Below are positions 6,423-30,149 of a stretch of DNA of 64,000 nt, piece by piece. The DNA lies in the IMG/VR virus record IMGVR_UViG_3300030616_000016, positions 167,648 to 231,647 of that record; one strand, given 5' to 3'. Within the stretch, counting starts at the first letter, position 1. Every line of letters begins with the position of its first letter. The position numbers and the translations under genes were made by a program. Under the pieces are notes generated by a model. That model was not told where the DNA came from, did not search any database, and worked only from the letters and a program-made list of their open reading frames with translations.

Positions 6423-7400
6423 ATGGCAAACATAGCTGACTGGATAGCATATAGCGGAAGACCTGGAATAACAGCAGATAGCCAAAGAGCTATAAATCAA
6501 GCTCTTGCAACAGGCAACAATACCCAGTTAAATACCGTCCAAAAGACATTCCTAAGTCCATCTGAATTCTGGGCTGGTTCCGACCACTATAAAATCAACA
6601 CAGAATATAGGCCTGATTGGGCATTGCGCGCAGCAGAAATAAACAATGTTCAAAGGTCAGATACAGTGTCATTTAGTGGGTCAGATATTACCGGTGTCAT
6701 ATGGTTTCCTATATTTGGTCAAGGCGCCGGCTTTGAAATACAAACATTACAGACAGTAACCGTAAATACTTTTAGAGATCTTATTCCTGGCAGAACGCTT
6801 GGGAGAGCTTCTGCTTCTGGCTACGCCAGAGGAACACGTACATGTGCAGGTTCTTTGGTTATGATTATGGCTGAACAAGAACCCTTTGTGCAGTTTGCCC
6901 CAGTTATTGAAGCCAATAGAAATAGTACTGATGCAGGCGACAACCCGATACTGATAGATAGAATTCCTCCATTCTATCTTATCCTGAATGCTACCTCTGA
7001 AGTTCCTCAGGCTTACAACAATAACGGAACTCAAAAAGTTCAGTCAGACGGATCCTATACTGCTCATAGCGGTATCACAGTGCTCAAGAATGTTCACTTT
7101 GTGAGTACCGGCACAACTTACAGCGTCAACGATTTATACACAGAAACAATGTATCAGTTTGTATGTGAAGATGTGATGCCTTTTGCTACTAAAGACGTTG
7201 TTGGTGTTTTGAGAAAGCTTAAGACTAGATTAAACAGCCAGCGCGACAATAATCCAAAAGCATCTCAGAAGGCTAGAGAGGCAATGATTAAACTGCAGGG
7301 CAAAGACAAGATTGATCCTTATTATGAAATAGAAACCTTTTTGACGAGAAATACTGGTGGCCGTGGAGAATTTACTTCTGACGCCGCTAGAGGGTTATAA
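6423..7400 (+). CDS. Tail tube paralog / tube initiator (T4 gp48/gp54-like role)
   Basis: Aligns by eye with the tube: SFSGSDI...LQTVTVNTFRD...GYARGTRTCAGSL...DRIPPF...VHFVSTGTTYSVNDLYTE. ATG at 6423 chosen over TTG at 6417. Confidence 0.75.
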   Translation: MANIADWIAYSGRPGITADSQRAINQALATGNNTQLNTVQKTFLSPSEFWAGSDHYKINTEYRPDWALRAAEINNVQRSDTVSFSGSDITGVIWFPIFGQGAGFEIQTLQTVTVNTFRDLIPGRTLGRASASGYARGTRTCAGSLVMIMAEQEPFVQFAPVIEANRNSTDAGDNPILIDRIPPFYLILNATSEVPQAYNNNGTQKVQSDGSYTAHSGITVLKNVHFVSTGTTYSVNDLYTETMYQFVCEDVMPFATKDVVGVLRKLKTRLNSQRDNNPKASQKAREAMIKLQGKDKIDPYYEIETFLTRNTGGRGEFTSDAARGL

Positions 7401-9028: not shown

Positions 9029-9793
9029 ATGGGAGAATTATGCGAGGCCTATCTAGGTCCAGAATATCTTCCAGGTCCTCTTATATCGGGTGAATATTTA
9101 AAAGGTGAGGTGGCAGAAGATCCAATTTTGTCACCTCATCTTGCACCTTATATCGCCGCTCTATTAAAGAAGTACGACGATATATTTCATGTTAAGTATA
9201 ATGATCAGGATTTTATAATCCGGCCATTGACTTCAAATGAATATAAGATACTGTGTAAGCTTAGGTTATACTTCGATCCTCAATTAGGGTTCGAAAAGAC
9301 AAGGCCTAGGTTTAGTGTTGTAAGCCTAGAAGATATATTTATAGACTGTATTCTTTATCCTGAGAATGTACTTGATATGGATTTAGATGCATATGTTGTT
9401 GATATGCTTATAGAGACTGCAATACAATATTCGGGATGGGATTCACAGGAGGATATATTTGTAACAAAAGCTCAAATGCAAGCTCATGTAACATCAGATC
9501 TATTAGAGGGCATGTTTACATTTATTAGACGAGCACACCCAGGTCTTGGTGATCGCGATCTTGAAAACAAGAATATTATTGATATAATGAAGTTAATAGC
9601 AAGTGCTGAATTGATATTGGATAAGCCATTCGAGATAGTCACCAAAGATGATAAATCAGATGCTTCTAAAATATCAACCGAAGTTATGATCAAAGAAGAC
9701 TTGGCAGGTCTTAATAAGCTTAATATGCAAGGCTTAAATAAGCCGGAGCTAGAATATGCCCGTAACGCCCAGAGAAGAACAGGAAAGAAGTAG
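9029..9793 (+). CDS. Second tail assembly chaperone (paralog of the upstream gene)
   Basis: LKKYDDIFHV...FIIRPLTSNEYK...DCILYP...LIETAIQYSGW parallels the previous protein. It has its own AGAGGA RBS. Confidence 0.68.
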   Translation: MGELCEAYLGPEYLPGPLISGEYLKGEVAEDPILSPHLAPYIAALLKKYDDIFHVKYNDQDFIIRPLTSNEYKILCKLRLYFDPQLGFEKTRPRFSVVSLEDIFIDCILYPENVLDMDLDAYVVDMLIETAIQYSGWDSQEDIFVTKAQMQAHVTSDLLEGMFTFIRRAHPGLGDRDLENKNIIDIMKLIASAELILDKPFEIVTKDDKSDASKISTEVMIKEDLAGLNKLNMQGLNKPELEYARNAQRRTGKK

Positions 9794-12700: not shown

Positions 12701-15194
12701 CCATGCAGTCGGAGGAGCTGCTTCTATATGTCGAAACTCGTCTATGCTTGAAGGCAAGAGGTTTGATGCGTATTCAGTCACAATAATAGAATTAGATTTT
12801 GCTCTTATTAAGCATTATTATAAAGGAATACCAAAAACCAAGCAGTTAAAATCTGCAATTGGCTGTAAAGACTATGTTTTATATACAATCAGAAGCATAG
12901 TCGCCTCCGATCCTCCTGAAATTGTTTATGACTTCCATGTTAGAGACAGGAATAGCATCTGTTTGCCTGGGCATGTTGTTCACAACTCAGATCCCTTTGA
13001 AGGTGGAGACACTGATTATTACAGGCCTCACCTTATAGCCACAATGCTTTCTGATACCTCTGCCATGGAAGCAAAGTATGGTTCCAAGTCCGCATATTGG
13101 TCTCATGGCACAATGTTCCCTACGCCTCATAATGTATTTGGCTTGAGTATACTGGCTGACCCATACTATGTAGAAAGAAAGCATTACTATGATAGGCCGT
13201 ATCCAATAACAGGAAGATCTAATCTTGCAGAATTTCCTATCTGGGGCAACATACTTGATGCTACTCTTGGAGAGGTTATTAAGCCTACCAAGGTAATGCA
13301 TGAAAATGAACTGGCGCATTATATAACTCAAACCCCTGAGTTCTCTGGAGACAAAGGACTGCAGAGTGTAGCTCAGCAGCTGTCTCTAGCACAAATTAGG
13401 CCTGGTAAGGTGCTGCCAAGAGTAGAAGGAACGCAGGATGACATTGGTCATGCAATATATGACATGACTGAATTTGCTGGATTAAAGGGATTTCTATTTA
13501 CGTCTCTCAAGAAGCAAGTCACTGGAAGCCCTGACTTCTCTGACCAAGGCGCAAGATGGGCTAGTGCAGATGATATTTATAATAAATCTGATGCATACTA
13601 TGATCTACAGCTTGGTGGTATGCTAGGTGCAACCGAGTTCTTCAGAAGATTTTTACCACATAGACAAAACCAAATAGACTATGTTAATCCTCTAAGCAAT
13701 GAAGCTCCGGCATGGCTCCCTGGTAAAAGGTCTGTTTTTGGCGATACAGACTTTATAGATTTCCATAGCTCAGATCCATACACTCGTATCAAGGAGGGGT
13801 CTAAGCGTCTTCCAGGTGCTCAGTATGAAGCTATACACGAACTACATTCTGGTAAAAAAGGCGAATATGATGCTTTTGATAGAATGAAGATATTGGCTGA
13901 TGTCAGCCCATATTCTAATGCCTTCAAGTACTATAAGAACATAGTGGATAAGATGGCTCAGGACGGCCAGCTAGACGGCTATTGGATGGATGAATACCTT
14001 GAAATAGACAGGAGAATTAAAGGAGAAGGACTGCCCGACTTTGAAGCAGAGACAGCAAGTAAAGAGCTTGGTATTTCTGGTGCAGCTGCTGGGACTGCTG
14101 GCCTACTAAATAATCACCTTAGAATACCATGGGTAGGTACTAAGTTAATGAGCATGGATCAAGATCCGCTGGTAGACTATCAAGAGAAGATTTCATTCAA
14201 TAATGACTTCAATGATTGGACTAAACCAATAGACACTATGTTGATGCCATACATGCGCGCACAAAGTGCAAGAGGAGCTATCTCTGGAGCTTTTGGTGGT
14301 GCAACACTAGGTGTTCTTAGCTCAGCTGCTGGAGGTTCATACGCCGGTACTGTAGGAGCTATCGGAGCAGGCGTTGGAACAGTGATGGGATTGGCCGGCG
14401 TTAATGCTCCTGAAAATGAAATCAGAAGAAGGTCTATGGAAGAATACTTCGATAGCTTAGAATATCTGAAGTACAATAAACTAGCTGACAAGGCTGGCGA
14501 ACAAGGCAATATTGCTCTTGCAAATAGATTAAGAAGAATGTCTAAGAGAACCATGGTAGGACTCGACTATTCTCAAGACACAACCTCTTTCTATAAAGCA
14601 GCTTACAGCGCTCTCCCAAAACCGGACAGGCAGTATCTGCAGGCTTTTATCCAGGTTGATCCGGGTAAAAGACCTGAAGTCCTTGACAAAGTTCCAGATT
14701 ATATGCAGCCTATTCTTATGCGTCTATGGAAAGATCCAAAGTCCGAAGCTGATGCCGGCAAGCTATCAAGAGTAGACCAAAACAATAGAGCCCATCAGGC
14801 TGCTTTATCGTATGTAAACAGTCACGGCGGCGTCCCAGATGATGATTCTATGGTATGGCATCCAGATATTAGCATTGAAGATGTCAAACTAAAGACCATT
14901 AAAAATCTTGGTGCTGACATACATAACTTTGGGTTTTGGGGAACTGATGAGCGAGATCTTGAAAGAACGCGGCCTTATATCAAACCCCTTCCATTCTCAT
15001 ATAATACAAACACTTACCAATCTAATAGGTTGAATTTTACTAATAATATGTTACAATATGGTTTTAGCAATGTGTATGTTGATTTGATAAGAAATCCTAG
15101 CAGGCAGCCAGAAAATGTATATTCAATTAATATTCAGAGAAATAGACTTGGTGACATTGCAGGGTTTGACAGCAGGTCTGAGGGAAGGTTCTAA
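9756..15194 (+). CDS. Tape-measure-like protein containing an intein (1812-aa precursor, 1405 aa spliced)
   Basis: Follows the chaperones. Helical and Ala/Gly-rich, with hydrophobic and glycine-zipper segments (WLGYGAGSLAVLAGAY; GAISGAFGGATLGVL...GAIGAGVGTVMGLAG). The intein occupies aa 671-1077. Confidence 0.72.
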   Translation: MPVTPREEQERSSGWLGYGAGSLAVLAGAYMLGKNPKTLYAMGETLDTAVSAISDVTTFGKQHIVENLSRITGKFGSSIETAARSPSSTKALNPEIFNSLQGALSAWESGAATTQTLRDALAAKFSNVTTVRPGVRNLQVKEITQAFSDITPDDPFTLFGRSIDKKGAGLLKQAQEIGIVDKDWVADKGMFIDGQRLVDANIFRPEKWGESLVKTLRGATGGFLTDSLLPSTHLLREIPDIAEISTKGLGKHIKEGTLDKAFKIGDQLVGITKDNFVVDLPKLRVGPVGNAISKAHAIRKGLVRHRTVDEMKELLASRGQDLNPRQEKLYRALENRFLSEYVGIGPQYASETALPKMLHGWLAKFYQTDLKPISMIPGKSFDEVWENLSIGQRVKVMAKGDVDSVAWARTSIAGDQDIRSFEQIQEIKRAIHGESWEAALDPSGEISKTTSVFGRRSVTNAEQFMAEMLDEEFKHTMSHNYYAYDTAELAGNWAHTVFTTPFRIASNMFGFGLKHDSLGKTALRATVGIPMAGYLAWQGANYLDFLTEQTTTFSPIKGVARTYAEAQIAKQSMANLIGISYASKTAESMIGIDIDSPISVALRSIGLPILGAKIGQKINPGMGRPGMYVGIGLAALTLSDDLSRDADELRDIYEGRKEVPVRKSRWWMLGCFDPHQSVMLEDGSLVHAEDVDSGMVVINDIGEYTEVTNVSVRITDKDEELISILPHGFPYPTKITGNHEVLVHRRPCIKPYTYKTGCHPRRITNSSCRSCPNASPDLNLSYVRADELRPDDFLILPRLKCNTSIGLIDLSDYHDLFVIDKEKIAAGQRLHGGVRRAPKSKYTNRIIHPDKDLGMLLGWVLAEGSKHSDNSIECVYNISESDFALQMGKIAHAKFGASYSLSERDGSTGRIVIGSKFLLGFCTSVGILPNKTPNIRRMLDYGECFVKGFVIGAVYGDGSYTDGHWRFKAKRLQTCIFLRDMIHAVGGAASICRNSSMLEGKRFDAYSVTIIELDFALIKHYYKGIPKTKQLKSAIGCKDYVLYTIRSIVASDPPEIVYDFHVRDRNSICLPGHVVHNSDPFEGGDTDYYRPHLIATMLSDTSAMEAKYGSKSAYWSHGTMFPTPHNVFGLSILADPYYVERKHYYDRPYPITGRSNLAEFPIWGNILDATLGEVIKPTKVMHENELAHYITQTPEFSGDKGLQSVAQQLSLAQIRPGKVLPRVEGTQDDIGHAIYDMTEFAGLKGFLFTSLKKQVTGSPDFSDQGARWASADDIYNKSDAYYDLQLGGMLGATEFFRRFLPHRQNQIDYVNPLSNEAPAWLPGKRSVFGDTDFIDFHSSDPYTRIKEGSKRLPGAQYEAIHELHSGKKGEYDAFDRMKILADVSPYSNAFKYYKNIVDKMAQDGQLDGYWMDEYLEIDRRIKGEGLPDFEAETASKELGISGAAAGTAGLLNNHLRIPWVGTKLMSMDQDPLVDYQEKISFNNDFNDWTKPIDTMLMPYMRAQSARGAISGAFGGATLGVLSSAAGGSYAGTVGAIGAGVGTVMGLAGVNAPENEIRRRSMEEYFDSLEYLKYNKLADKAGEQGNIALANRLRRMSKRTMVGLDYSQDTTSFYKAAYSALPKPDRQYLQAFIQVDPGKRPEVLDKVPDYMQPILMRLWKDPKSEADAGKLSRVDQNNRAHQAALSYVNSHGGVPDDDSMVWHPDISIEDVKLKTIKNLGADIHNFGFWGTDERDLERTRPYIKPLPFSYNTNTYQSNRLNFTNNMLQYGFSNVYVDLIRNPSRQPENVYSINIQRNRLGDIAGFDSRSEGRF
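11766..12986 (+). mobile_element. Intein with LAGLIDADG homing endonuclease (407 aa)
   Basis: Block A CFDPHQSVMLEDGS, block B KITGNHEVL, LAGLIDADG blocks LGMLLGWVLAEGS and FVIGAVYGDGS, block F VYDFHV, terminal HN followed by a +1 Ser. The exteins join as RWWMLG|SDPFEGG. Confidence 0.93.
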
Positions 15195-18100
15195 TGCCTG
15201 ACAAGCCAGAACAAAGAAGTGGATCAGTAGCGCCTTGGTTGGTTGGCGGAGGGCTATTAGCTTTTGGTGGGTATCAGGGATATAAGCACTTCGGCCAGAA
15301 GCACTTAGGAAATATGGCAAATAATCTAGGCGATGAGATTAAAGCTGTTGTGCCATCAGTAGAACAAACCGAACAAATAATCAAACCAAGTTCTTCCACA
15401 GAATTCTGGCATAAGTTTGACAGAGCAGGAACTCCTGCAGCTGGCATTGGAGCCACAAATTCATTTATGCATGATATAGTTGATGTCGAAGATGCACACT
15501 ATAAAGGATTCGATGAGATTTTAACTCCTAAGAGAGCTGCTGCTTATAACAAAATTGTGACAGCTCAGCTTACCGACTTTCAGTCTGTTATGAATAATAC
15601 ACACGGAACCAATCTTCTTAATATAGAAGCAATCAACGAGTCTATAAATAGTGCAAATACTGGTTTTATTGATGGCATCAGCGAAAGAGCAAAGAGAAAT
15701 ACAGAAACAGCTGGCTTAATAGGAAGGTCTGATGTAGAAGATATATTTTTTGCTCATTATGGAAGAAAGGGTAAAAGAGCTCAAGAGTTCATTGCAAGAG
15801 AGCAGGCTGCTGTATCACAACTGGAAGATATAGCAAGCCGGCTTACAGCATCAACTGGGCATCAAGTTAAAATACAGGCCATTAACCGCAGCGGTGTAGC
15901 TCCAGAAATAGGGCTCAGAGTAGGTGGCGAGTTTATTTCTATGGGCGCCGCCACTGGAACAAGGCTTCAGTTTGGTTCAAATGTATATCAGGGGCCTCAA
16001 GCCATTCTTGGCAGAACAGCTGAAGGCAGGCTAAAGACCATGACCTTTCATGAAGCTTCTGTAAATGTTCTTGAACAAAAAATGGGCGAGCTAAAAGGCA
16101 TCAAGTCTTCAAGTCAGCTTAGATCCAAGATATCCGGTATATTATCCGAGCCTAGAGAGGCCGCAATCTTTTCTAGTCCTGAAGATAAGATGAGAGCTAT
16201 AGCTGGTGTTCCTGGACAACCTATGAGCGCTGCCGATGTCGCTAGAAGTGGTAACATTGTAACTATGCCGAGTATAGTTAAAGAATCAGGCGCACAAGCT
16301 TCAAGAGATGCTGCTGAAACTCTTAGAAGAATAACTGAATGGGCAGGCAAAGAGGATTGGGACGAGACTACTCGCGCAAGAATGTTTCATATAAAACCTG
16401 GACAAAGGATTACTCCAGAGCGCGTGCTAAGGCATTTCGTTACAGCTGTTAAAGGAGATAAGGTAGACAGACTGACTTTCTCTGCTTTTACTTCTTTGAA
16501 AGCTCTTACGGTTGGAGGGATGCTCACTCCGTTTCAAAACATAGCCAAGGAAGGCGGCGAGGAACTACGCACAGGATTGCTTAGAAAATCTCAATCCGCC
16601 AAATATAAATATAATAAGTATTATGGCTATGGAAGGGAAATGAGACGGCAGAATCTTGCTGGGCTTCTTGCAGGTGAGGGTTCTGAGCGTTTGGCTGGAA
16701 GCGTAAGTGGCAAGGTTCATGCTATAGATAAAGTTCAGAAATTAATTGATGGTGAATGGGTAGACGTTCCAGACAAACTAGTTGGCGCGTTAGGTGGTAA
16801 ATTTTCAGGTGGTTCTGGTGTTATGGCTATTAGTGAGGAATTCGGCGATTTATCTCACGAGTCATCTGGAGATTATATGCTCAAAAAGATAAGCGGCTCT
16901 CCTAACAAGAAAATCAAAGATACAATTAATGAACTTGCAAGAAAGGGCAAGCTAGATGTAAGGAATCTAAAAGCAGCGGGTATTACAGTTCGCAAAAAAG
17001 ATGCTCAGGGGCTATTGCGAACTGAAACAGGAAGCCTGGAATTTAGCCAGGCTGCTTTAAAGCAAGCAAGCGAGACAGAAAACTCTCTGGTTATACCCGG
17101 TAAAAGACTTAGAAAAATAAGTGAATCTGGCTATGCTTTTAGGCTTGGGCCTACTAGTGTTTCAGCTACAAGAGGTACTCGATTTATAGGCAAAGGCTCA
17201 GAGGGAGTTCTTGGTGCTTTGTGGTCAACGAATATTAAACCGGAAGTAAGATCTCAAATGGCTTATGCCACAATACAGAGCCTAATGGAAGAATCAGATA
17301 TCAAATATTCTCGCAATTTAGACGAGTTTGCAGCTACTATATCTGGTGAACTAGATAGAGCCGATCCTAATGCCAGATATTTTAAAGGCGTAGAAGGCAA
17401 TCAAAAAAGATGGCAGCAGCTTACAGATCTAATGACTGAAAGAATGCAGAAAGAAGGAGTAGATAAACGTAGCCTGGATAAGTTTAGAGCATCTATGGAA
17501 GGATATGGTCCTGGTAAGACCATAGAATTTGCTGCTGAGGGTCAACACTACAGAGCTAGAGCTACGACACTAACTGGTACTGCGTTTCCTAGAATGTATC
17601 CTCTTGAAGAGGAGACAGCATTGCATGGTACAGTAGGCAGATATAAATCTGAGTATACAAAGAAGCTGGATGATTTTAATAAAGCATTGGCTGGACATGA
17701 GGACCTTCCTGGTGTTCAAAGATTCATGGAAGCTCAAACAAAGAAACATAGTATTCTTGAAGATGTTTTACGCCACGAATCTGTGCCAGATACACTGATA
17801 AGAAACTTCAATGAAGCTGAAACTCAACAGCTAGAGGCCATAAGAGAAATACAAAGAATGGAAGGCGGTCCAATAAAAGGCATAGAGAAGAAGTTTATTG
17901 CACTCAAAACAAGCGAAGAACAGTTTATGTCCAAGCTTACACAGAGAGCGCAAAGTACTCCACGCAGATATAGACCACAAGACTTTATGATGATGGCTAT
18001 AAAAGCTCATGCTGACCCTGAAAACAGAGACACAGGTGTGCTTGAGTATCTGCTTCGCATGCAGGAAGGTAGCCAGGCTCGCCGCAGCTTTCAAAACGTG

Positions 18101-20698
18101 GCTATGGCAGCTGAGCCTTTATTTGGAACAAGTACCAAACAGATTATTGAAGAAGTAGACAAGGGTATTCTATTTGGCAACAAGGCCTTTAGTTTATCAA
18201 ATCCTGATGACGTCGAACAGCTTAAAGTTATTACCAATGTCATGGGTCAGATTAAAGATGCGGCAGATTCTGCAGACGACGAAGTTGTCAATGCCATGTC
18301 CATACAAGACATTCTTAGAAGATCTAAAGGCCAATTTGAAGCTGCTGGATTAGGAGATGTTAATCCAGAAGAGCTTCTAAGTAAAAATCTTGCTATTACA
18401 GGAATGCCAGAAGGCACGTTCATGGATCTGGAAATTGAACAGGCTCTTAAAACAGGTACTGATAAGTTTCTTGTTTCTTCAAAGAATCAAAGAGAAATGA
18501 TACTTCCATCTCTTGGAGCAACAGGAAGGCTGTTTGGCAAAGGTCCTAATGCTGAAATGATATCTTTGAATGAAATGCGCAGGTCTATACTTGGTGCACA
18601 CCATGGGCTGTCTCTTATGTTAGAAGACGGAGAAAACATAGACGCTCTCAGATCCTCATATGCTACATTTCTTAAATCGCTTGCAGAGGAAAGCCATAAA
18701 ACCGGTTTGTTTGGTAGAGCAGGCGAATTGCAGTGGACTAAAAGCGCGTATCCAAACATCAGACAGTTTGATTTCTCAGATATGAGAAGAATGGATTATC
18801 TTCGTCAGGCTAAGGATTGGGCTGGATACCAGGCAGAAGCTGCTACTGTTCATATAAGCAGAGAAATGGCTGAAGAGTTTGGTGCGCTCGACAAGCTTAC
18901 CAAAAAGGGCGCCGATGATCTTTATGCTCATATGCAGTCTTATCCCGGCCTTACTCCTGGAATGCAGAGGACGGTTAAGCTTAGACTAGATGAAAACCTC
19001 AGAGGCAGGCAAATGAAGGTTGGATATGGAATTGCAATAGCCGGAGCCAGAGACTTTGATGCTGACCGTGTTGCTTTGATGTATCTAGGTGATGAGCATG
19101 AAGTTGTTAGAAATCTTTTGAACAACGATCCTAATTTATCCAAAAGCGATGCCAAGGCTATGGCTCGTAAATTTGTTTCTAGCATGAAGCAAGATTTTAG
19201 AGCAGATGCAGAGTCTATAGCATATCTACAACATTCTGAGATGAAGCTTGCACAGCGCGTTGCAGACGCAAACTTTTTATCAGCAACAAACAAGTTACAT
19301 AAAGATGCTAATGTTAATGCTGTTAGAGATATCGTCAATTATATGGGAAGGATTGATGATGTAGAAATTAAGTCTGGTGCTTACGACGATGAGATTCAGC
19401 GAATTCTATCTAAGCACGATATATCTGGTACAGCCGCAGATACGATGATCGACGTATTTAAAAAGAAGCTTGTAGCATCTAAAGAACTTGGTGTAACTAC
19501 AAACAAGCTTATGATGATGCGTAATACTCTTGCCGATAATATGATTAGAGACAAAGGAAGCAGGCAAGCTACTGATTTCGCGATACAATACTTTCATCAA
19601 ATAACACAGTCTCTTATTAGCGCTAGAAAGCATGGAGAAAAAGGTGATGCTTCTAGAGAATTAATCGAACTTCTGCAAGGTAGATCTGTTGATGGTGATT
19701 TCAAGAACCTTACAAGAGCACACAAGGATAAAATAGGCGAGCTGTTAGGAGAATCTCTTGTTGAAGGCGGTCTTGCTGGAGAGGTAAAAGACAGATGGTT
19801 GTGGAGAAGTGTTGATGAAGGCGTGTATGATTCTAACCAAGTTAAGTGGATAATAGATGAGCAAGCACAAAAGCTAAACGTAAAATCATTCAATGAATTA
19901 AAAGAAACCTTTGTTAACTTGGCAGAAGAAAATCTTAGAAGAAGAAATGAATGGGACGAGTCTAATTTCTTGTTTGAAACAACCATGAAGAAGTCTGGGC
20001 TTGGTAGATTTGCAGAGAGAGGTCAATGGTCTGTTAGACAGTTTATTGAACAGGCTCCTAAGCATATGAAGAAGCTTGGTGCCTTTGTTAAGAAGCAAGC
20101 AGATCTTCCTGAGTTTGCTCGTCTTGTTTCTCATATAACTGGAATCAATGCTATTGCAGCTTATGCTGACGACGCATCAAGGGCTACTATAAGAGAGGCT
20201 GAGAAGACAGCTTCAGATGCTTTAAATTATGCAAAGGCTGGCGATGCAGCTGCTGACATAGCAACTTCCAAAGGTAAATCATGGCTTACCAGACTGTTTG
20301 ATAAGTCAGACGAATACTTGGCTGGATCACCAAAAGCTAAGTACGCACTTGCTGGAGCTGCTATAACAGGTGCTGCTGCCTTCACATTTAGAATGTTTAG
20401 CGACCCGACCATGCCAGCTCCAGAAAGACCTGGTCCAGCCGCTCCGCCTGCTATGCCAATGGATCCAAGACAGCGCGGCATAACTCAATATCAAGGCGCT
20501 CCGCCGGCTCCTGTTTCTCCTTCATATGGCCTTGCAGATAGATTCATATCCTCAGGCTTAAGCGCTGCTCCAGAAATAGCTGTTGCAGAAATGACTAATT
20601 CACTGGACGGGCGTGGTTCTTTTGATATAATGGATCAGAGCCTAAGCGATCCACAATTCCAGGAAGAGTACGAATCGGCTCAGAGAGGTAGGTTTTAA
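15194..20698 (+). CDS. Giant virion protein with a two-barrel RNA polymerase beta-prime-like double-psi-beta-barrel (DFDAD); putative virion RNA polymerase
   Basis: aa ~1160-1300 are collinear with beta-prime motifs: LKSLAEESHKTGLFGR, VHISREMAEEF, HMQSYPGL, GRQMKVGYGIAIAGARDFDADRVALMY. Both termini are hydrophobic. Coupled to both neighbours by TAATG overlaps. Confidence 0.65.
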   Translation: MPDKPEQRSGSVAPWLVGGGLLAFGGYQGYKHFGQKHLGNMANNLGDEIKAVVPSVEQTEQIIKPSSSTEFWHKFDRAGTPAAGIGATNSFMHDIVDVEDAHYKGFDEILTPKRAAAYNKIVTAQLTDFQSVMNNTHGTNLLNIEAINESINSANTGFIDGISERAKRNTETAGLIGRSDVEDIFFAHYGRKGKRAQEFIAREQAAVSQLEDIASRLTASTGHQVKIQAINRSGVAPEIGLRVGGEFISMGAATGTRLQFGSNVYQGPQAILGRTAEGRLKTMTFHEASVNVLEQKMGELKGIKSSSQLRSKISGILSEPREAAIFSSPEDKMRAIAGVPGQPMSAADVARSGNIVTMPSIVKESGAQASRDAAETLRRITEWAGKEDWDETTRARMFHIKPGQRITPERVLRHFVTAVKGDKVDRLTFSAFTSLKALTVGGMLTPFQNIAKEGGEELRTGLLRKSQSAKYKYNKYYGYGREMRRQNLAGLLAGEGSERLAGSVSGKVHAIDKVQKLIDGEWVDVPDKLVGALGGKFSGGSGVMAISEEFGDLSHESSGDYMLKKISGSPNKKIKDTINELARKGKLDVRNLKAAGITVRKKDAQGLLRTETGSLEFSQAALKQASETENSLVIPGKRLRKISESGYAFRLGPTSVSATRGTRFIGKGSEGVLGALWSTNIKPEVRSQMAYATIQSLMEESDIKYSRNLDEFAATISGELDRADPNARYFKGVEGNQKRWQQLTDLMTERMQKEGVDKRSLDKFRASMEGYGPGKTIEFAAEGQHYRARATTLTGTAFPRMYPLEEETALHGTVGRYKSEYTKKLDDFNKALAGHEDLPGVQRFMEAQTKKHSILEDVLRHESVPDTLIRNFNEAETQQLEAIREIQRMEGGPIKGIEKKFIALKTSEEQFMSKLTQRAQSTPRRYRPQDFMMMAIKAHADPENRDTGVLEYLLRMQEGSQARRSFQNVAMAAEPLFGTSTKQIIEEVDKGILFGNKAFSLSNPDDVEQLKVITNVMGQIKDAADSADDEVVNAMSIQDILRRSKGQFEAAGLGDVNPEELLSKNLAITGMPEGTFMDLEIEQALKTGTDKFLVSSKNQREMILPSLGATGRLFGKGPNAEMISLNEMRRSILGAHHGLSLMLEDGENIDALRSSYATFLKSLAEESHKTGLFGRAGELQWTKSAYPNIRQFDFSDMRRMDYLRQAKDWAGYQAEAATVHISREMAEEFGALDKLTKKGADDLYAHMQSYPGLTPGMQRTVKLRLDENLRGRQMKVGYGIAIAGARDFDADRVALMYLGDEHEVVRNLLNNDPNLSKSDAKAMARKFVSSMKQDFRADAESIAYLQHSEMKLAQRVADANFLSATNKLHKDANVNAVRDIVNYMGRIDDVEIKSGAYDDEIQRILSKHDISGTAADTMIDVFKKKLVASKELGVTTNKLMMMRNTLADNMIRDKGSRQATDFAIQYFHQITQSLISARKHGEKGDASRELIELLQGRSVDGDFKNLTRAHKDKIGELLGESLVEGGLAGEVKDRWLWRSVDEGVYDSNQVKWIIDEQAQKLNVKSFNELKETFVNLAEENLRRRNEWDESNFLFETTMKKSGLGRFAERGQWSVRQFIEQAPKHMKKLGAFVKKQADLPEFARLVSHITGINAIAAYADDASRATIREAEKTASDALNYAKAGDAAADIATSKGKSWLTRLFDKSDEYLAGSPKAKYALAGAAITGAAAFTFRMFSDPTMPAPERPGPAAPPAMPMDPRQRGITQYQGAPPAPVSPSYGLADRFISSGLSAAPEIAVAEMTNSLDGRGSFDIMDQSLSDPQFQEEYESAQRGRF

Positions 20699-23600
20699 TG
20701 AATAAAAATATTAAAATAGGTCCAGTACAATTAAGTGTTGACGCTGATAGCTTTTCTATATCAGATAGAAAGGTTAATACAATGGTGCCTGGTCTTCGAA
20801 GTAATATACCAAAGGTCATCAATACAGGAAAGAGCAGGCTCGAATATTCCTTCAGTGCTATATTCGCAAACGAAGAAGAGATCAACACAAAGCTAAGACC
20901 TATTATTGCCTATTTCAAAGCAGTTCCTTTTATTACTGTAAAATCAGATGTATTGAATAAGCTTCTTGCAACTCGTCTTGTATCAAAAGCTGTTGCGAAT
21001 CAAAGCAGCTCCTATGATAAGCTAGGTTCTAATTTTATACAGAATAAACTTATCAGCGATCTTCGTAATGCAATATACGAACATCTTTTAGATCCTATTG
21101 TTAAGAGCTACATGAATTTGACTGTTATAGATAAAACTATAATAGATCAGTTTATAAAAGAAAAACTTGGTGTGTCATTGGATGATATAAATCGACCAGC
21201 TCTAAGAACTCTTGTGTCAAGATATGTAGAGCTAAATTACTATGTGTCTAAGGCCACAATCCCTATCAAGGGTGGATCTAACGAACAGCAGATACGTGAA
21301 TTAAGAAAGCATATAAGAGAAAAACTCGCTGGCCAGCTAAAAGAAAGAGATGTTATAGACAGAGCAAAAACTGCTGGTATAGTACAGGTTGCTGATGCCT
21401 CTGATGTATATGATGGTGACACTTTTGTTGTTAGTGGAACAACATATCGTTTATTTGGCGTAGATGCATTTGAAACAGTAAGACCAGGAACTCAGCTTGG
21501 TCCAGGTCAAGAAAAGAAACCTGAGAAATCATACGCAGCTTCCGCTAAATCCTTTCTTGTAGACAGACTTGTTGGTCAGAACTTTACTCTATCTGAAGTT
21601 GGAACTAGAACATATAATCGTGTTTTAGGAATATGCGAATCCGTATCTCCAAGCCATGGAGAGAATGCTAATGTTGGTTTAGAGATGGTTAGCCAAGGCA
21701 TAGCGCTTCCATCTGGCGTTGCAAGTATGGGTAGATATGCAACTATAGAAAGCTTGCCATATCTCAAAGCTGCTAAAACTGCTGCAGAATCTGGGTTGGG
21801 GATATGGAGTCAATCTGAAATTCAAGTGCCAGAGCTTTGGAGAAAGTATGCACAAAATATTAACAACTTTGCTAATCCGTCAAGTCCGACTGTTTTAGAT
21901 TCAGACATACAAGAATTGACAATAAAGCCTGCATCTGTTCTTAAACAGCTTATCGATTCTTTAATTGAAGAGCTTGAGGGTCGTACTCCTAATATAGGTA
22001 TTAACTTTGTTGCATCTGCTCAGCCAATCTTAGATGCATATGAGCAGAGCATTGTATCTGAAGACAAGAAAAAAGAGGACGTAGATAGAGTTTCTGAGTT
22101 TATTGGATTCCCAGAAGATCTTATCCCGTCATGCTTTGCTGGTATTTCATATTCAGCAGTGCACGATTTACCACAGGCCATACAGGCACAGTTTCATTTC
22201 TCAGTGTTCAATCATGCTCCTTATGGTCCTACTTTTGGCTTCAAGTCTGACGTAGTTCAGCAAAACGGAGTTTCAGCGGTAGTATCAGATCCAGACATAA
22301 CATATTCACGTTTAGTGCAAGGCTATGTTAGCAAGGAATTTTTGGAGGAGCCAGCATCCAAACAATACCTAACAGCATACACGCCAGCTAAAGACTTTAC
22401 CATACACTATAATGATGTAGACACGATTGTTAAGAAGACATCAAAAGCTAAATTAAGAGAGTCAGATATTAAGACTAGCGAAAGAGTGCAGAAGTCAAAG
22501 GAAATGTTGAACAAGCGCGAATCTGTTGTGTTCATAGGGAAGCGAATTACTATATCTCCTGATTCTGGTGAGATAGAAATATCAATATTGGAGGATGAAG
22601 AAAAGAAACAGTCAACTGTACATAAGCTTAATAATATACAAATTGAATCTGTAAGCTGCAACATAACAAATAACATTGTCCATTTACCTATTGAAGCTGC
22701 CGCTATTCCAACTGCTCAACACATTGGAAGAGGTATAGGTTCTGTGTCGTTAGAGATTTCTTCTACAGATGAGAACTCTATGGCTGTTTTTAGAACTCTT
22801 GAGCATGCTATTCAAAATGCAATGCATATATCCAATCAGTATGGAGCTCCTACTTCTTTCAGAATAACTAATCCAACAATTAATTTGTCTGGAGCCAAAG
22901 ACTTTGTTTTCGATAATATAGTTGTTAGCAATGACAGATCAGCTCCAGGTAAGTATAATATGAGGATTAATCTGGTCGAAAGCTTTAATGCCGAGGAAGA
23001 CACAGAAGAGAAATTGATACCTAAGATTGATTTTGATTTCAAGGATGGCTCTGGTGTCGCAAAGAAAGTAGTAGAGGCATTAAAAGAACACGCTGGTAGT
23101 CCATTTTATGACAAGTTTATGTCTACTTTCTTCCCGATGACAAAGCCTAGTAGGTCTGTTTCTTCTGATATAGAAGAGTATGTAAATACATATCCTCTTA
23201 TGCTTCTATTTGCTCACACCCATAAAGACACGCCAAATCCGGTTCTTTTGGATGCATACGGAGAAAATATAGGATTTATAGAAAGCTTTTCTAATATTGT
23301 AAATAGAGTTAAATATGACAACATAACTCCCAAAGCTGTTAATATGAGAGACAATCTCATTGAAAGATTGTATCAAATTGATCGCGCATGGTTCGTAGAT
23401 ATAGCTAGCTCTCTTCCAATAAACATAAGCACTGCAATAAATGAAAGAAATCCTTTTAGCACAGCGTCTTCAGTACAAGATGATGTAAGAAAGTTTAGCA
23501 ACCAGTCAATAGTATTTGACAAGGATAATTATAATCCAAGCTATTTGATAAAAGGAGGTAAGTGGGTCATTGGCCCATGGGGTAAAGGACCAGGCGCTAC

Positions 23601-26600
23601 TGCAGGATCAACAGATGCCATGTTAAATCGCAGAGACTACTTTTTGCAGTTCTTATCTACAAAAGATTTTACCAAAAAGTATTTGTTAAACTTATCACAA
23701 GGTTGTTTTAGTGCTGCATATTATTTCAGAAATCTTTTTGAAGATGAATTAGATAGCAACGAGCAAGCTAAGAAAGCCTTTTATAATTGCATCTCATTTC
23801 TTCTTAGCGAAGCTCTAGAATCTAGTCCTAATTTTGAAGGCTTCTTTGGTGCTTGGATTACAAGACAGGTAGGCCTTTATTCTGAAGACCTAGATAGAAG
23901 TCTTTTGCCCACAAGACAAGAGCCAACTACATTTAATGATCTTAATCTACCTACATATAGAGATGTATTTGGCAAAACAGACTCAGTAGTAATTGAAGAA
24001 AGAAAGAAGTTGATTTCTGACTTGCGTGCTATTAGCATTTATATTCCAGAGATATCATACAATGTAGATACTATATCTAGTCCGTATCAATTTTATTCCG
24101 ACATTGTTACTCAGTATCATGTTGGCAAGAGTAATATTGGCCTTCATATGATTAGCGGTTCTAATTTATATAGATCCCAAGACAAGGCTCTCGATAATGT
24201 ATATGACACTGCAGTAGAAATTTACTCAAAAGAAACTGAGACGATGAAATCTAGGCTGCCTGTTTCTGATGCAGTACTTCCAAGAAATAAAGAGTTTTGG
24301 TCGCGTTTAGACCCAAATGCAATAGCTCGTTCTCCAGATGATGTCGTTGAGCCTGGGTGGATGTATGATCTTCAGTGGGAAGATGTGTCTGATACGGCAT
24401 CTGTTACAATGAACCATCTTAAAAAGGTGCATTCTAATAATGTTAACAAGATATCGCCAATAACAACTAATGACTTAGAAGACAATGACATACTTAACAA
24501 CTATGAAGATCTAACTGTAGGCGATAATTACATAGAAAAGATAAAAGAAGTATCTAGTAAAAAAAGAATGTTCAAAGGGTCGCAAATAGGCGATATTAAC
24601 TTTGCTGAAGTTCCTTTACAGTCTATATCTTCTGTTGATAAGTCTAAAAAGAAGTATCCGTCAAGCGGGACAAGTACTACGACTAACTTGCCTGGTAGTT
24701 TTTCTACTGACTCTATCGATACTGATAGACATACTAACAGATTAACAAGAGATAGATATAAAGACGACAAGATATCTTCTATTAGAAAAGCTTATCCAGG
24801 ATACGCGATATATTTTCTTGAAGAGGATGCAGAGGACTGGGGTTATCTTGATGATTATTACAGGTACGACTCAGTTATATCTTGGGACGTTGTACAATCC
24901 AAAAAAGATATAGACACTGCAGTAGTTAAATTTACTAACTTTAAGGGCGTGTTAAGCAATCAGTCTCCAAACAAAGATCGCCTAAAAGATGAAGTTGTTA
25001 GTGCAACTGAAACTGTTGATGAAAGTATTTCTGAGCCAGTGGATCCTAACTCTGCTTATGAGGGAGACCTAAGTGGTCTAGAAGGGCTGTTAACAGCCTT
25101 TAAGCTTAGACAAGGAACTAGAATTATTATCAAGTCTGGATTTACAACTAAGATTTCTGAGATGGAGACTATATTTACCGGACAAGTGGTCGAAGTATCC
25201 CCTGGAGATATCATCACTGTTATTTGTCAAGGATATGGATCTCAGCTTATGTCTTCCATGAATAAAGAGTTTATGTGGGATGATCATAACTTCCCAGAAA
25301 TATTATCAACGGTTCTTTATGACACAACTTACTTTGGCAAATGGGAGAGATTTGTTGATAGGCTTCCTGGTCAAAGTAAAATGTATAGCGGAACCGTAGG
25401 ATCAATTATTTCTCACAAGCTTATAGGCGATTATTTTCCTAGCACCGCTGATGATAATATATATAGAATAGCAAAACCTCACGATAATTTCTTTAAGTGG
25501 ATGTGGGATTGGGCGTGGGGAACAAATTGGCAAATTCGAGGACCTATTTGGTCTAATATATTGACAATGACAAGATATGTGCCAAATACGATACTAACAA
25601 TTCGTCCTTACGATGGACGAGCTACGCTGATATGGAATGATTATGATGGCTACTATATTGACACTAACCACATAAGCAGTCTTAGTTCTCAAATCGGCCA
25701 TGCTGCCTCGGATTATTTGCTAAGGTCTGGTCTTAAACAAAACGACAACCAGACCAAATCAGAAATGCTTGGTGAGATTTTATCCAATGATATTTTTACA
25801 TCTAATGGATCATCTAGTCCGTATATGAGAAGCGAACAAAGGCTAAGCGATGCCAGGTCAAATTTATACAACCACGGCATATATGATTTTAATGATAAAA
25901 TAGACTTGATTAATGAGGAGCTGATATTAACCATTTTGTCTGATTGGTTCATGGATAAGTTTCTTAAAAATATAATAATTAGTAGTGAAGAGCTATTTTC
26001 AAATCATGTAGTTAAGCTAAGAATGGATTCTACCGTACCAATCTCTATTGAACCTATTCTGAAGACCATGGAAAGACCTAGTCAAAAATATAGCGAAGCT
26101 GTGCCATTTTCTCCGCTTTCTAAGCCTACTGGAAATAGAAAAGTCGAAAGCAAGTTTTATGTGTCTGATGTTAGCGGAAATATTGCAAGGGGTATTATTC
26201 CCATAGCATACTTACTACCAGAAAACGTAAATATTGCTAAAGACAGAGACAATATAAGAATAGATCAAATTAAAAAAATAGTTAGTGCTGTAGTTAGATA
26301 TGCAGAGAATCATCCTGGCATAGGTATCAATATCAAAGACGGCAAAACTATGGATGCTATTATGCAGTCTTTAGATATGGAGAATATCATACCTGGATAC
26401 TTGGCTATGTATGATAGTCGTAATTTCTTAGCTGCATTTGAAATATATCTTCCAATTAGTCGCGAGGTTGTATCGCAGATATTATCGTATTTACTTCCTG
26501 CGATATATGGATCTGTAGACTATGTCAGCAGGAATCCCGGCACATTTTTATCTGACGTAAACAATAGCGCAGATAAACTAAAAGATCCGTATGTACCTCC

Positions 26601-27549
26601 TAATATGAGACCTATAGTCGAAACACACTCTGCGGTTAGTGGTGTAAATATCATTAAAAACAATATTAGAGCTACAATGTCTGAGTCGGCCAATACTGTT
26701 TCTCTCACTAAAGAGGACTCTAATAGTACTATGGAGCTTTCAGTTTCTCCTGGTTTAACAACCAAGCTTGCCAAGTCAATTGTAGACATAAACTGTGAAG
26801 ATGTTCAGGTGAGAACTCAGGCAATATTTGGTGCCCTACAAGAAGAAATGCAGAAAATGTATAGAGGTCTTCTTATTTTATCTGGCAATCCAAGAATTAA
26901 ACCTTATCATTATATTAGAGTAGACGATTATTATAATAGTATGTTTGGATCTATAGAGGTAGATAAGGTTATTCATTCTTTCAATCATAAGAGCGGATTT
27001 ACATCTTCTATTGTTCCTCATATGATTGTTAGAGCCAGAACAGATCGTGGTTATTATGCTGCTATGATGGCAAATGCCGAGGCTGGTTTTAAGACTATGC
27101 TTGGTTTAGGAGCAGCGTTGGCTCTAGCTATAGGTACGTTTGGCATTGGATGGATTGGAATTATAGCTGGTGTTGGCATAGGTATAGGCACTGGAATAAC
27201 AACTAGTAAGTTTCTAGGTCCTGGAGCAGGTCAGCCAGGATGGTTTCTTGGTATACCATACCCCACGTTTTCTGGCCAGGGCTTATTTGATAAATCTAGG
27301 CTCAATCCTGTCAAAATAGCTCCGCTTATATACAAGGGTGCGCCGTATGTTGTTGGGCTTGAGGGATGGGACAATAAACAATGGACATATTCAGAATATA
27401 AACGAGAGCTTATGCGACTATATGAAGCCGGATGGGACAAATTTCATTCGCAAATCTCAGACGCTAAGAACGCTTTGTGGGATGCTGCTGGTGAAGCATA
27501 TCAGGCAGGCCATCATACCGCAGAACATATTTGGTGGAATAGGAGGTAG
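20698..27549 (+). CDS. Giant baseplate hub-like protein with a staphylococcal nuclease (SNase) domain
   Basis: SNase motifs VYDGDTF, YRLFGVDAFET, TYNRVLG, NVGLEMVSQGIA, GLGIWS. Hub-type motifs GTRIIIKSGF...IFTGQVVEV...VICQGYG and SGNPRIKPYHYI...IEVDKVIHSF. C-terminal hydrophobic hairpin. Confidence 0.72.
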   Translation: MNKNIKIGPVQLSVDADSFSISDRKVNTMVPGLRSNIPKVINTGKSRLEYSFSAIFANEEEINTKLRPIIAYFKAVPFITVKSDVLNKLLATRLVSKAVANQSSSYDKLGSNFIQNKLISDLRNAIYEHLLDPIVKSYMNLTVIDKTIIDQFIKEKLGVSLDDINRPALRTLVSRYVELNYYVSKATIPIKGGSNEQQIRELRKHIREKLAGQLKERDVIDRAKTAGIVQVADASDVYDGDTFVVSGTTYRLFGVDAFETVRPGTQLGPGQEKKPEKSYAASAKSFLVDRLVGQNFTLSEVGTRTYNRVLGICESVSPSHGENANVGLEMVSQGIALPSGVASMGRYATIESLPYLKAAKTAAESGLGIWSQSEIQVPELWRKYAQNINNFANPSSPTVLDSDIQELTIKPASVLKQLIDSLIEELEGRTPNIGINFVASAQPILDAYEQSIVSEDKKKEDVDRVSEFIGFPEDLIPSCFAGISYSAVHDLPQAIQAQFHFSVFNHAPYGPTFGFKSDVVQQNGVSAVVSDPDITYSRLVQGYVSKEFLEEPASKQYLTAYTPAKDFTIHYNDVDTIVKKTSKAKLRESDIKTSERVQKSKEMLNKRESVVFIGKRITISPDSGEIEISILEDEEKKQSTVHKLNNIQIESVSCNITNNIVHLPIEAAAIPTAQHIGRGIGSVSLEISSTDENSMAVFRTLEHAIQNAMHISNQYGAPTSFRITNPTINLSGAKDFVFDNIVVSNDRSAPGKYNMRINLVESFNAEEDTEEKLIPKIDFDFKDGSGVAKKVVEALKEHAGSPFYDKFMSTFFPMTKPSRSVSSDIEEYVNTYPLMLLFAHTHKDTPNPVLLDAYGENIGFIESFSNIVNRVKYDNITPKAVNMRDNLIERLYQIDRAWFVDIASSLPINISTAINERNPFSTASSVQDDVRKFSNQSIVFDKDNYNPSYLIKGGKWVIGPWGKGPGATAGSTDAMLNRRDYFLQFLSTKDFTKKYLLNLSQGCFSAAYYFRNLFEDELDSNEQAKKAFYNCISFLLSEALESSPNFEGFFGAWITRQVGLYSEDLDRSLLPTRQEPTTFNDLNLPTYRDVFGKTDSVVIEERKKLISDLRAISIYIPEISYNVDTISSPYQFYSDIVTQYHVGKSNIGLHMISGSNLYRSQDKALDNVYDTAVEIYSKETETMKSRLPVSDAVLPRNKEFWSRLDPNAIARSPDDVVEPGWMYDLQWEDVSDTASVTMNHLKKVHSNNVNKISPITTNDLEDNDILNNYEDLTVGDNYIEKIKEVSSKKRMFKGSQIGDINFAEVPLQSISSVDKSKKKYPSSGTSTTTNLPGSFSTDSIDTDRHTNRLTRDRYKDDKISSIRKAYPGYAIYFLEEDAEDWGYLDDYYRYDSVISWDVVQSKKDIDTAVVKFTNFKGVLSNQSPNKDRLKDEVVSATETVDESISEPVDPNSAYEGDLSGLEGLLTAFKLRQGTRIIIKSGFTTKISEMETIFTGQVVEVSPGDIITVICQGYGSQLMSSMNKEFMWDDHNFPEILSTVLYDTTYFGKWERFVDRLPGQSKMYSGTVGSIISHKLIGDYFPSTADDNIYRIAKPHDNFFKWMWDWAWGTNWQIRGPIWSNILTMTRYVPNTILTIRPYDGRATLIWNDYDGYYIDTNHISSLSSQIGHAASDYLLRSGLKQNDNQTKSEMLGEILSNDIFTSNGSSSPYMRSEQRLSDARSNLYNHGIYDFNDKIDLINEELILTILSDWFMDKFLKNIIISSEELFSNHVVKLRMDSTVPISIEPILKTMERPSQKYSEAVPFSPLSKPTGNRKVESKFYVSDVSGNIARGIIPIAYLLPENVNIAKDRDNIRIDQIKKIVSAVVRYAENHPGIGINIKDGKTMDAIMQSLDMENIIPGYLAMYDSRNFLAAFEIYLPISREVVSQILSYLLPAIYGSVDYVSRNPGTFLSDVNNSADKLKDPYVPPNMRPIVETHSAVSGVNIIKNNIRATMSESANTVSLTKEDSNSTMELSVSPGLTTKLAKSIVDINCEDVQVRTQAIFGALQEEMQKMYRGLLILSGNPRIKPYHYIRVDDYYNSMFGSIEVDKVIHSFNHKSGFTSSIVPHMIVRARTDRGYYAAMMANAEAGFKTMLGLGAALALAIGTFGIGWIGIIAGVGIGIGTGITTSKFLGPGAGQPGWFLGIPYPTFSGQGLFDKSRLNPVKIAPLIYKGAPYVVGLEGWDNKQWTYSEYKRELMRLYEAGWDKFHSQISDAKNALWDAAGEAYQAGHHTAEHIWWNRR

Positions 27550-29000: not shown

Positions 29001-30149
29001 ATGGCAAGAACAATAGATAAAACTGGTTTAATGAACAGAATGTTGCGAAGGCTAAGCAACAGAGGATTTAATTCTCTTAGTACTGGATCGATGGTGCGTA
29101 CTATGGCAGAGATCTGGGCTGAGGAAACTTCGCAAGTTCTTGAAGATATTGACTTTATAACATCTAGATATATGTTGGCTAATGCTACTGGTGGCTTTTT
29201 GGACATTCTTGGTCAACTTGTTGGATTGCAGCGTACACCGCCAATTACTTCTTCTGTAGATGCTGAAGACGAAATTGTAAAATTCTATACAACAACAGGT
29301 GTTTTATCTGATTACCTGCCTGCGTCTGATGTTTCTGGATTTGCAGAAATACCAGCTGGAACAAGAATATCTGATCCTGACAATGTTGTTGTATATGAAG
29401 TAGAACGCACAATTGTTCCTATGGGAGTATCAGAAATATATGTTGGAGCTAGTGCTGTTGAGACTGGGTCTCATACCACAGTTCCAGCTAATAATCTTAC
29501 AAACCATGACTTAAATATATCCAATATAAGTGTTACGAATACAAGTGCGATATCAAATGGAGCGGATTTAGAGAGCGATGAGAATTTCAGGTATAGAATT
29601 TCTAGATCTCGCACGACTGCAGCTAAGGCTAATGAGACTGCTGTCAGACTGGCAGCGCTTCTTGTTCCTGGTATATCTGATGTTAATCTTAAACCAAATG
29701 TATATGGCCCTGGTACTTTTGAAGTATTGCTTGTTCCAGAAGGCAATGTTGTTACAGAATCACAGAGAACTACAGCTGAGATTAGTATAAGAGACGCCGC
29801 ATCTTTTGGCACGACTATATATATTACAGAGCCGACTTATTTGACTATAAATATGGTTGTTCATGTTACAACCCAAAACATGTCGACACAAAACGACAAT
29901 TCCACTTCACAAGAAACTGCTCTAGGAAATGTTCTGTCATATTTAAGCTCAATACCAATTGGCGGATCTTTTAATCCAGCAGTTCTAGAAAGAAGATTGT
30001 TAGATGGAGATCCTAATCTTATCAATGCAGAAGTAATATTACTATGTATTGATGGTAAACCAGTTCCATCTTCTATATATCAGCTTGATGATAATGAATT
30101 ATTTATGCCTGACCCACAACTATCTAATCCGATACAGGTGCTTATATGA
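29001..30149 (+). CDS. Baseplate J-like wedge protein
   Basis: ATGGFLDILGQLVGLQR, IPAGTRI, VTNTSAISNGADLESDENFRYRI, VPGISDV, GPGTFEV: a canonical Baseplate_J motif series. Confidence 0.92.
   Translation: MARTIDKTGLMNRMLRRLSNRGFNSLSTGSMVRTMAEIWAEETSQVLEDIDFITSRYMLANATGGFLDILGQLVGLQRTPPITSSVDAEDEIVKFYTTTGVLSDYLPASDVSGFAEIPAGTRISDPDNVVVYEVERTIVPMGVSEIYVGASAVETGSHTTVPANNLTNHDLNISNISVTNTSAISNGADLESDENFRYRISRSRTTAAKANETAVRLAALLVPGISDVNLKPNVYGPGTFEVLLVPEGNVVTESQRTTAEISIRDAASFGTTIYITEPTYLTINMVVHVTTQNMSTQNDNSTSQETALGNVLSYLSSIPIGGSFNPAVLERRLLDGDPNLINAEVILLCIDGKPVPSSIYQLDDNELFMPDPQLSNPIQVLI

Follow-up and report, generated by a model that had tools for sequence, protein, structure and literature searches.

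The window analyzed here, a stretch of 64,000 nucleotides that forms the final 64 kb of IMG/VR virus record IMGVR_UViG_3300030616_000016 (231,647 bp, estimated to be 95% complete), carries the contractile-tail module of an uncultured phage from marine sediment. Within this module we identified P0001, a protein of 2283 residues that is almost certainly a true baseplate hub with a built-in staphylococcal nuclease (SNase) domain. The nuclease is complete and is inserted in the first of two recurrent slots of an accessory region of ~1300 residues, which lies between an N-terminal domain and the hub fold. As a finely balanced judgment, we regard a virion-tethered, Ca-dependent nuclease acting outside the cytoplasm as the most likely function.

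The nuclease domain and its active site

Four motifs define the domain in the reading frame of P0001 on the forward strand (translated with genetic code 11). DGDT (aa 239-242, nt 21412-21423) is equivalent to D19-G20-D21-T22 at the Ca site of SNase, RLFGVDAFE (aa 251-259, nt 21448-21474) to R35...D40-x-x-E43, and TYNR (aa 305-308, nt 21610-21621) to Y85-G86-R87, while GLGIW (aa 366-370, nt 21793-21807) corresponds to the C-terminal helix end of the SNase fold, with W370 as the equivalent of W140. The Pfam profile SNase (PF00565), a search suggested by the initial annotation of this DNA, matched aa 251-372 above its gathering score (35.5 versus 21 bits; E 1.4e-8) and over profile positions 3-107 of 107. 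SNase was the sole Pfam family recognized in P0001, even at E<=1, and a six-frame search of the whole genome returned a single SNase match (41.7 bits, E 2.3e-11).

In the PDB, phmmer with aa 200-420 returned no SNase and only a spurious sulfotransferase match; a five-homologue profile weakly recovered thermonuclease 4qf4 (E 0.086), in an alignment that pairs DGDT with DGDT, YRL.GVDAFE with FRLLLVDTPE and Y.R with KYGR. The AlphaFold2 model reaches a block-mean predicted local distance difference test score (pLDDT) of ~60-90 over aa 222-400 and contains the five-stranded barrel of oligonucleotide/oligosaccharide-binding (OB) type and the three helices expected of SNase. Superposition of aa 222-371 of this predicted structure on residues 6-141 of Staphylococcus aureus nuclease with VIA gave Z 12.7-13.0 at a root-mean-square deviation of 2.5 A (127/136 residues, 22-24% identity), and Foldseek returned a template modeling (TM) score of 0.70-0.75 normalized to the nuclease.

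Conservation is concentrated in the same residues. D239, G240, D241, T242, R251, D256, E259, Y306, R308 and W370 are invariant in P0001 and its four full-length homologues, the metagenomic proteins P0002-P0005, which share 32-46% identity with it (BLAST). The Ca2+-ligand residues D21 and D40 of SNase, which act together with the T41 backbone, and their neighbors D19 and T22 are thereby matched by D241, D256, D239 and T242, and the catalytic and phosphate residues R35, E43, R87 and Y85 by R251, E259, R308 and Y306. Across the five homologues, the fraction of invariant columns is 0.20-0.32 over aa 251-400, compared with 0.10-0.12 over aa 101-200 and 0.10 over aa 401-450. The initial annotation had proposed these motifs and an intact set of SNase residues at this place, and the Pfam match, the invariance and the fold comparison confirm both. 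Judged from sequence and model, the domain is probably catalytically active.

Stand-alone relatives are distant. A word search with aa 226-392, covering proteins of ~92-292 aa, returned none at E<=0.001; an SNase profile scan of viral contigs yielded no fusions to hubs and only four small stand-alone open reading frames (ORFs) of 112-189 aa (25-31% identity). Together with these viral ORFs, plasmid proteins of the 'thermonuclease family' (29-37% identity) were the closest stand-alone relatives identified.

Hub identity and gene neighborhood

A profile of aa 1340-2283 matched 1954 cluster representatives at E<=0.001, most of them ~2000 aa long and matched in their C-terminal half. An AlphaFold2 model of the hub region, built on 88 sequences (pLDDT 75; predicted TM score 0.73), could be aligned through model residues 26-776, corresponding to aa ~1365-2115, with the full length of central hubs from contractile systems. 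The comparison was made with VIA, with which Foldseek agrees, and gave the following Z scores:

Hub of phage Milano (8fqc_C1): 23.0
Tail proteins of Neisseria and MuSo2 prophages: 21-22.5
Mu gp44 (1wru): 21.1, over 292/325 residues
VgrG and spikes of extracellular contractile injection systems (eCIS): ~20
Pyocin R2 hub: 19.7
T4 gp27 (1k28_D): 17.4

At the sequence level, tblastn matched the hub region to ORF147 of phage 0305phi8-36, annotated 'baseplate hub protein', and BLASTP aligned P0001 with the product of that gene, gp147, in three collinear blocks, as it did with the hub encoded by Bacillus mycoides KBAB4. Hub membership rests on fold and synteny, because no sequence-profile match to Phage_GPD or gp27 was obtained, either with Pfam at E<=1 or with the 88-sequence profile against the PDB. 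The link between gp147 and gp27 itself required a comparison of hidden Markov models (HMMs) with one another (Hardies et al. 2007, PMC2147016). A profile of the N-terminal extension gave no meaningful matches in the PDB. The single PHROG match in P0001 is labeled 'endolysin', a label that stems from fused domains. The initial annotation had taken the rest of the protein for a baseplate hub, and this is supported by the gp27/gpD fold (Z 21-23), by a gene order like that of 0305phi8-36 and by the Baseplate_J gene downstream.

Family-wide comparisons used a set of 160 proteins (157 retrieved proteins and 3 Bacillus proteins), in which the positions of the N-terminal domain, SNase and Peptidase_M23 (M23) were set by HMMs iterated within the set. 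The architecture of P0001 is as follows (window coordinates):

20698..27549, forward strand: P0001, giant baseplate hub with accessory nuclease domain; one ORF of 2283 aa, with 4 full-length homologues
20707..20961 (aa 4-88), forward strand: family-wide N-terminal domain, found by iterated HMM in 137/160 family proteins
21013..21330 (aa 106-211), forward strand: helical domain directly before the nuclease, from AlphaFold2 helices; block-mean pLDDT ~67-85 from aa 112
21361..21813 (aa 222-372), forward strand: SNase-type nuclease domain, from Pfam PF00565 and fold match
21874..24714 (aa 393-1339), forward strand: middle region with no recognized fold; conserved blocks at ~aa 465-515, 650-760 and 1040-1090
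24790..27042 (aa ~1365-2115), forward strand: central hub fold of gp27/P2 gpD/Mu gp44/VgrG type with large insertions, from AlphaFold2 and VIA
27088..27222 (aa ~2131-2175), forward strand: Gly-rich hydrophobic, membrane-span-like segment directly after the hub fold; low pLDDT
27238..27546 (aa 2181-2283), forward strand: conserved C-terminal module, a small beta unit plus helices in the model

The N-terminal domain (aa 4-88) matches aa 271-477 of 0305phi8-36 gp147 and aa 411-523 of the KBAB4 hub by BLAST. Its pLDDT in the model is poor, and in the ESM-Atlas it resembles Mu gp43 (DNA_circ_N), Phage_P2_GpU and Dit_like at 0.92-0.94. The genes for Mu gp43 and P2 gpU are located between the tape measure and hub genes. 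As a lead only, this suggests that a gpU/gp43-type gene and a gpD/gp44-type hub gene are fused in the hub family, with the nuclease looped out between them.

The helical domain had no family match in Pfam. Neither Pfam (E<=1) nor PHROG (E<=0.01) recognized the middle region; its ESM-Atlas leads (aa 393-1340) are weak, at 0.86-0.88, and the pLDDT of aa 453-800 is mostly <50. The Gly-rich segment contains the highest Kyte-Doolittle window of P0001 (2.05 over 19 aa, at residue 2141), and its spaced Gly pattern is retained in the 88-sequence family consensus; this segment may enter the host membrane after penetration. Within the C-terminal module, 40% of the columns over aa 2201-2250 are invariant in the five homologues.

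The genes around P0001 in the contractile-tail module are the following:

4299-5648: sheath
5668-6360 and 6417-7400: two adjacent ORFs right after the sheath, both matching phrog_9206 'major head protein' (E 5e-50 and 1.5e-12)
9756..15194: ORF of 1812 aa, in the position of gp145 of 0305phi8-36, a giant virion protein
15194..20698, forward strand: gene of 1834 aa, putative tape measure by position only, in the place of gp146 of 0305phi8-36, a 'hypothetical tape measure protein'
Between P0001 and the 142-aa gene: gene of 332 aa
28553..28981, forward strand: baseplate gene of 142 aa, homologue of gp150 (BLASTP 1e-10 to gp150 and 1e-12 to the KBAB4 neighbor; phrog_25235)
29001..30149, forward strand: Baseplate J/gp6-like wedge protein (Pfam Baseplate_J 82.6 bits; phrog_6 'baseplate wedge subunit' E 5.8e-35; BLASTP 3e-16 to gp151)

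P0001 thus occupies the position of a hub-type gene, with the sheath and the giant ORFs upstream and the gp150-like and Baseplate_J genes downstream, and the same gene order recurs in the contig encoding P0003. A podovirus-style internal or ejection protein, considered for the three successive giant ORFs, was ruled out by the sheath, Baseplate_J and the gp27 fold. The putative tape measure had no family match and no BLAST match to gp146, and megablast found no close DNA relatives of the phage among deposited phages.

The position of the two phrog_9206 ORFs suggests that they are tail-tube paralogues and that they are mislabeled by PHROG. The 1812-aa ORF gave a weak Intein_splicing match at aa 782-1077 (18.8 bits, versus a cut-off of 35.8) and no other family match. 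The three giant genes abut, each ending on the coordinate at which the next begins (9756..15194, 15194..20698, 20698..27549), which suggests tight translational coupling.

None of eight common peptidoglycan-hydrolase families (SLT, Peptidase_M23, Phage_lysozyme, Amidase_2, VanY, NLPC_P60, Amidase_3 and Peptidase_M15_4) was found in the whole genome in a six-frame search at E<=0.01. The endolysin, and the tail lysin if there is one, belong to a type not yet recognized, or else the host envelope is unusual.

Exchangeable enzymes across the hub family

To survey accessory domains, we performed a census of the best 150 of the 1954 hub-family representatives. SNase occurs in ~1/5 of the hub representatives examined and, with the N-terminal domain and the hub as reference points, is found in no fewer than three (>=3) different places. 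Pfam recognized M23 in 7, SNase in 5, VanY in 2 and SLT in 1 of 40 sampled N-terminal extensions; on this same 40-protein sample, the iterated HMMs and Pfam agreed for M23 (7 versus 7) and nearly so for SNase (6 versus 5). In the family set, 35/160 proteins carry an SNase-like domain, counting only matches with >=90 model positions, and 22/160 carry M23; none carries both, where ~4.8 would be expected if the two were independent, an exclusion that is only suggestive. The copies are distributed as follows:

Slot after the N-terminal domain: SNase 16, M23 2
Slot just before the hub fold: SNase 15, M23 19
Slot before the N-terminal domain: SNase 2 (both Bacillus), M23 0
In between: SNase 2, M23 0
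C-terminal of the hub: SNase 0, M23 1

SNase and M23 use the same two recurrent insertion slots. The initial annotation had asked whether homologous hubs exchange the enzyme in this slot, and they do. Its general statement that hubs usually carry peptidoglycan hydrolases likewise holds within the family, where M23, VanY and SLT occupy the same N-terminal extension. The rarity that it implied for the nuclease fusion does not hold: the fusion recurs in the family and had already been reported in 2007. P0001 itself follows the pattern of the gp147-type family, with a collinear N-terminal domain and hub domains 1 and 3, and exchangeable enzymes between and around them.

The active site is largely retained across these copies. 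All six of D19, D21, R35, D40, E43 and R87 are kept in 23/35, and D40N is the sole difference in 8 more; clearly degenerate copies number 3/35 (P0018, P0044 and P0037). Residue by residue, D21 is present in all 35, R35, E43 and R87 in 33 each, and D40 in 23, with N in its place in 8; the Y85 position holds Y in 21 and Phe in 8, so that 29 have Y or F. Pfam SNase at E<=0.01 did not recognize P0019, P0043 or the KBAB4 protein, although the motifs and the iterated HMM match are present in them. Repeated insertion at differing positions, together with kept catalytic residues, argues for selection on enzymatic activity.

Outside the count of 35, a partial SNase-like match (DGDT, R..G.N..E) lies C-terminal to the hub in P0007, a distantly related metagenomic protein of 3834 aa, at aa ~3402-3536.

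Proposed site of action and comparison with known systems

In the mechanism that we favor, P0001 would form the predicted trimeric central hub in the baseplate of a jumbo contractile-tailed phage, as an enlarged protein of gp27/gpD type, and three nuclease copies would be carried on the outside at the tail tip. SNase chemistry needs ~millimolar Ca2+, free Ca2+ in the bacterial cytoplasm is well under micromolar, and sea water and pore water contain ~10 mM. The nuclease would be silent in the producing cell because its Ca2+ need exceeds the cytoplasmic level, and it would be switched on after release of the virion into sea water or pore water. There it could degrade a coat of DNA or RNA on host cells, on sediment particles, on the biofilm matrix or on the virion, or lysate DNA in which new virions would become entangled, and clearing this nucleic acid would let the baseplate reach its receptor. 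Such an enzyme would do for nucleic acid what the depolymerases and wall hydrolases in the same slots of sister hubs do for their own substrates. The initial annotation had pointed out that the nuclease would need to be kept away from the phage genome during ejection, a concern that may apply. The phage DNA would presumably be shielded from it, traveling inside the tube and the hub channel.

The initial annotation had proposed either clearance of extracellular DNA or delivery into the cell. The evidence on the site of action leans to outside the cytoplasm, because the alternative payloads M23, VanY and SLT, which act on the wall, all have extracytoplasmic substrates. The Ca2+ requirement argues in the same direction, as does the fact that the characterized active SNase enzymes, among them S. 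aureus Nuc2, are, to our knowledge, secreted or surface-tethered. We regard an extracellular site as an even call.

Several points weigh against this proposal. The N-terminal accessory region may be buried in the baseplate. We found no activity data, virion proteomics or structure for P0001 or its homologues in the literature. The AlphaFold2 model of aa 1-800, built on five sequences, is reliable only at ~aa 112-450. Kinship among the counted proteins exaggerates the exclusion between SNase and M23, and the figure of 35 copies rests on a self-iterated HMM because Pfam misses divergent copies. Moreover, the SNase-bearing hubs of Bacillus adjoin separate SLT and M23 genes, so the nuclease does not merely stand in for a wall hydrolase.

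An alternative is that the nuclease is an injected effector, which crosses the envelope with the tail tip and degrades host, plasmid or prophage DNA in the cytoplasm, in the manner of the VgrG-borne nuclease effectors of the type VI secretion system (T6SS). The catalytic set is intact, and the hub has the VgrG/gp27 fold, on which both T6SS and eCIS carry effectors (Z ~20); part of P0001 may also enter the membrane, as suggested by the membrane-span-like Gly-rich segment after the hub. We nevertheless consider this alternative unlikely. The cytoplasm is generally known to fall far short of the Ca2+ need of SNase, and a domain built into a chain of 2283 aa, of which the hub has three copies, could not pass through the tail tube while folded; no cleavage site or linker suggesting its release was seen. 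In addition, its slot-mate M23 and extension-mates VanY and SLT have substrates outside the cytoplasm, and a non-specific cytoplasmic nuclease would meet the incoming phage genome too.

Still less probable is a phosphodiesterase that acts on an envelope polymer other than nucleic acid, such as teichoic acids or phosphoglycans, during wall penetration. We know of no SNase-family enzyme with a substrate of this type, and the nucleotide-phosphate residues R35, R87 and Y85 are kept, as expected for a nucleic-acid substrate. What speaks for such an activity is that SNase shares its slots with wall hydrolases and never occurs together with M23, that plasmid-prophages of Bacillus, a host with teichoic acids, carry it in their hubs beside SLT and M23 genes, and that the lack of the eight hydrolase families in the present genome leaves the wall route unexplained.

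Equally improbable is a non-catalytic OB-fold module, comparable to the inactive SNase repeats found in Tudor-SN, that acts as a spacer or in the binding of a receptor, the tape measure or DNA: although Tudor-SN SNase-like domains match the P0001 model as well as the real nuclease does (Z 13.1) and key residues are lost in P0018, P0044 and P0037, the six-residue set is intact, or altered by D40N only, in most copies and across lineages of little sequence identity, and kept Ca ligands and a kept general-base Glu are not expected of a mere scaffold.

Beyond P0001, we advance only tentatively the broader proposal that SNase represents a widespread, unrecognized class of virion-borne 'nucleic-acid depolymerase', used interchangeably with peptidoglycan hydrolases in giant-hub phages, such that infection in DNA-rich habitats, sediments and biofilms among them, would depend on cutting extracellular DNA or another envelope phosphodiester polymer. 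Virion-associated enzymes are usually regarded as polysaccharide depolymerases and wall hydrolases; a nuclease built into the tail tip would place extracellular nucleic acid among the barriers that phages actively remove. This would matter for infection in biofilms and sediments, in which most of the DNA lies outside cells. Nothing known is overturned by the finding, and cultured Bacillus elements (pBtic235-type and pBWB401 of KBAB4) exist as models.

The closest precedent comes from the Bacillus thuringiensis israelensis element BtI1, in whose gp27-like hub an SNase domain was reported and its use called obscure (Hardies, Thomas & Serwer 2007, PMC2147016). Our census turns that observation from a curiosity into a recurrent trait, and the 'obscure' use into a testable hypothesis. 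Our literature searches turned up no functional work on SNase domains carried by tails or virions, and nothing relevant in the phiKZ atlas paper.

We found SNase-bearing Bacillus hubs in plasmids pBTHD789-2 (235 kb) and pBWB401 of B. mycoides KBAB4, where the protein is annotated 'nuclease'; both hubs contain DGDT...RYNGV(D/E)TPE at ~aa 130-320, and Pfam recognizes SNase in neither at E<=0.01. Like P0001, the hubs of BtI1/pBtic235 type and of KBAB4 are giant gp27-like proteins (~2455 aa in Bacillus), homologous to gp147 of 0305phi8-36, with an SNase-like domain, and they share with it three collinear blocks and the same gene order up to Baseplate_J. However, identity over the shared hub blocks is only 27-28%, and the SNase domain precedes the N-terminal domain (aa 410-520) in the Bacillus hubs, whereas it follows that domain in P0001. 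The Bacillus loci further encode separate SLT and M23 proteins just downstream of the hub, while the genome encoding P0001 has neither, and their hosts are cultured Bacillus species, whereas the present phage comes from marine sediment.

The 'hyperplastic' T4 gp27 homologue gp147 of 0305phi8-36 belongs to the same family as P0001 (profile E 1.2e-37), and the gene order corresponds: gp145 virion protein, gp146 tape measure, gp147 hub, gp148 gpV-like, gp150 and gp151 gpJ-like. In place of SNase, gp147 has a transglycosylase at its N terminus and, at its C terminus, NlpC/P60 and M23 domains. T4 gp27, P2 gpD, Mu gp44 and VgrG share with P0001 the full hub fold (Z 17-23, ~290-320 aligned residues) and a gene position between the tape measure and wedge genes. 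These proteins are only ~320-650 aa long, whereas the hub fold of P0001 is broken by ~450 inserted residues, is preceded by ~1340 additional residues and is followed by the hydrophobic segment and the C-terminal module.

Finally, the nuclease domain shares with S. aureus nuclease A the fold, the Ca ligands and the catalytic Arg and Glu, and differs from it in lying inside a virion protein without a signal peptide and in having a longer loop after E43 and a C-terminal extension. This kind of fusion has been known since 2007; what is new here is that the trait is common, that the catalytic residues are kept and that the nuclease alternates with M23 in the same slots.

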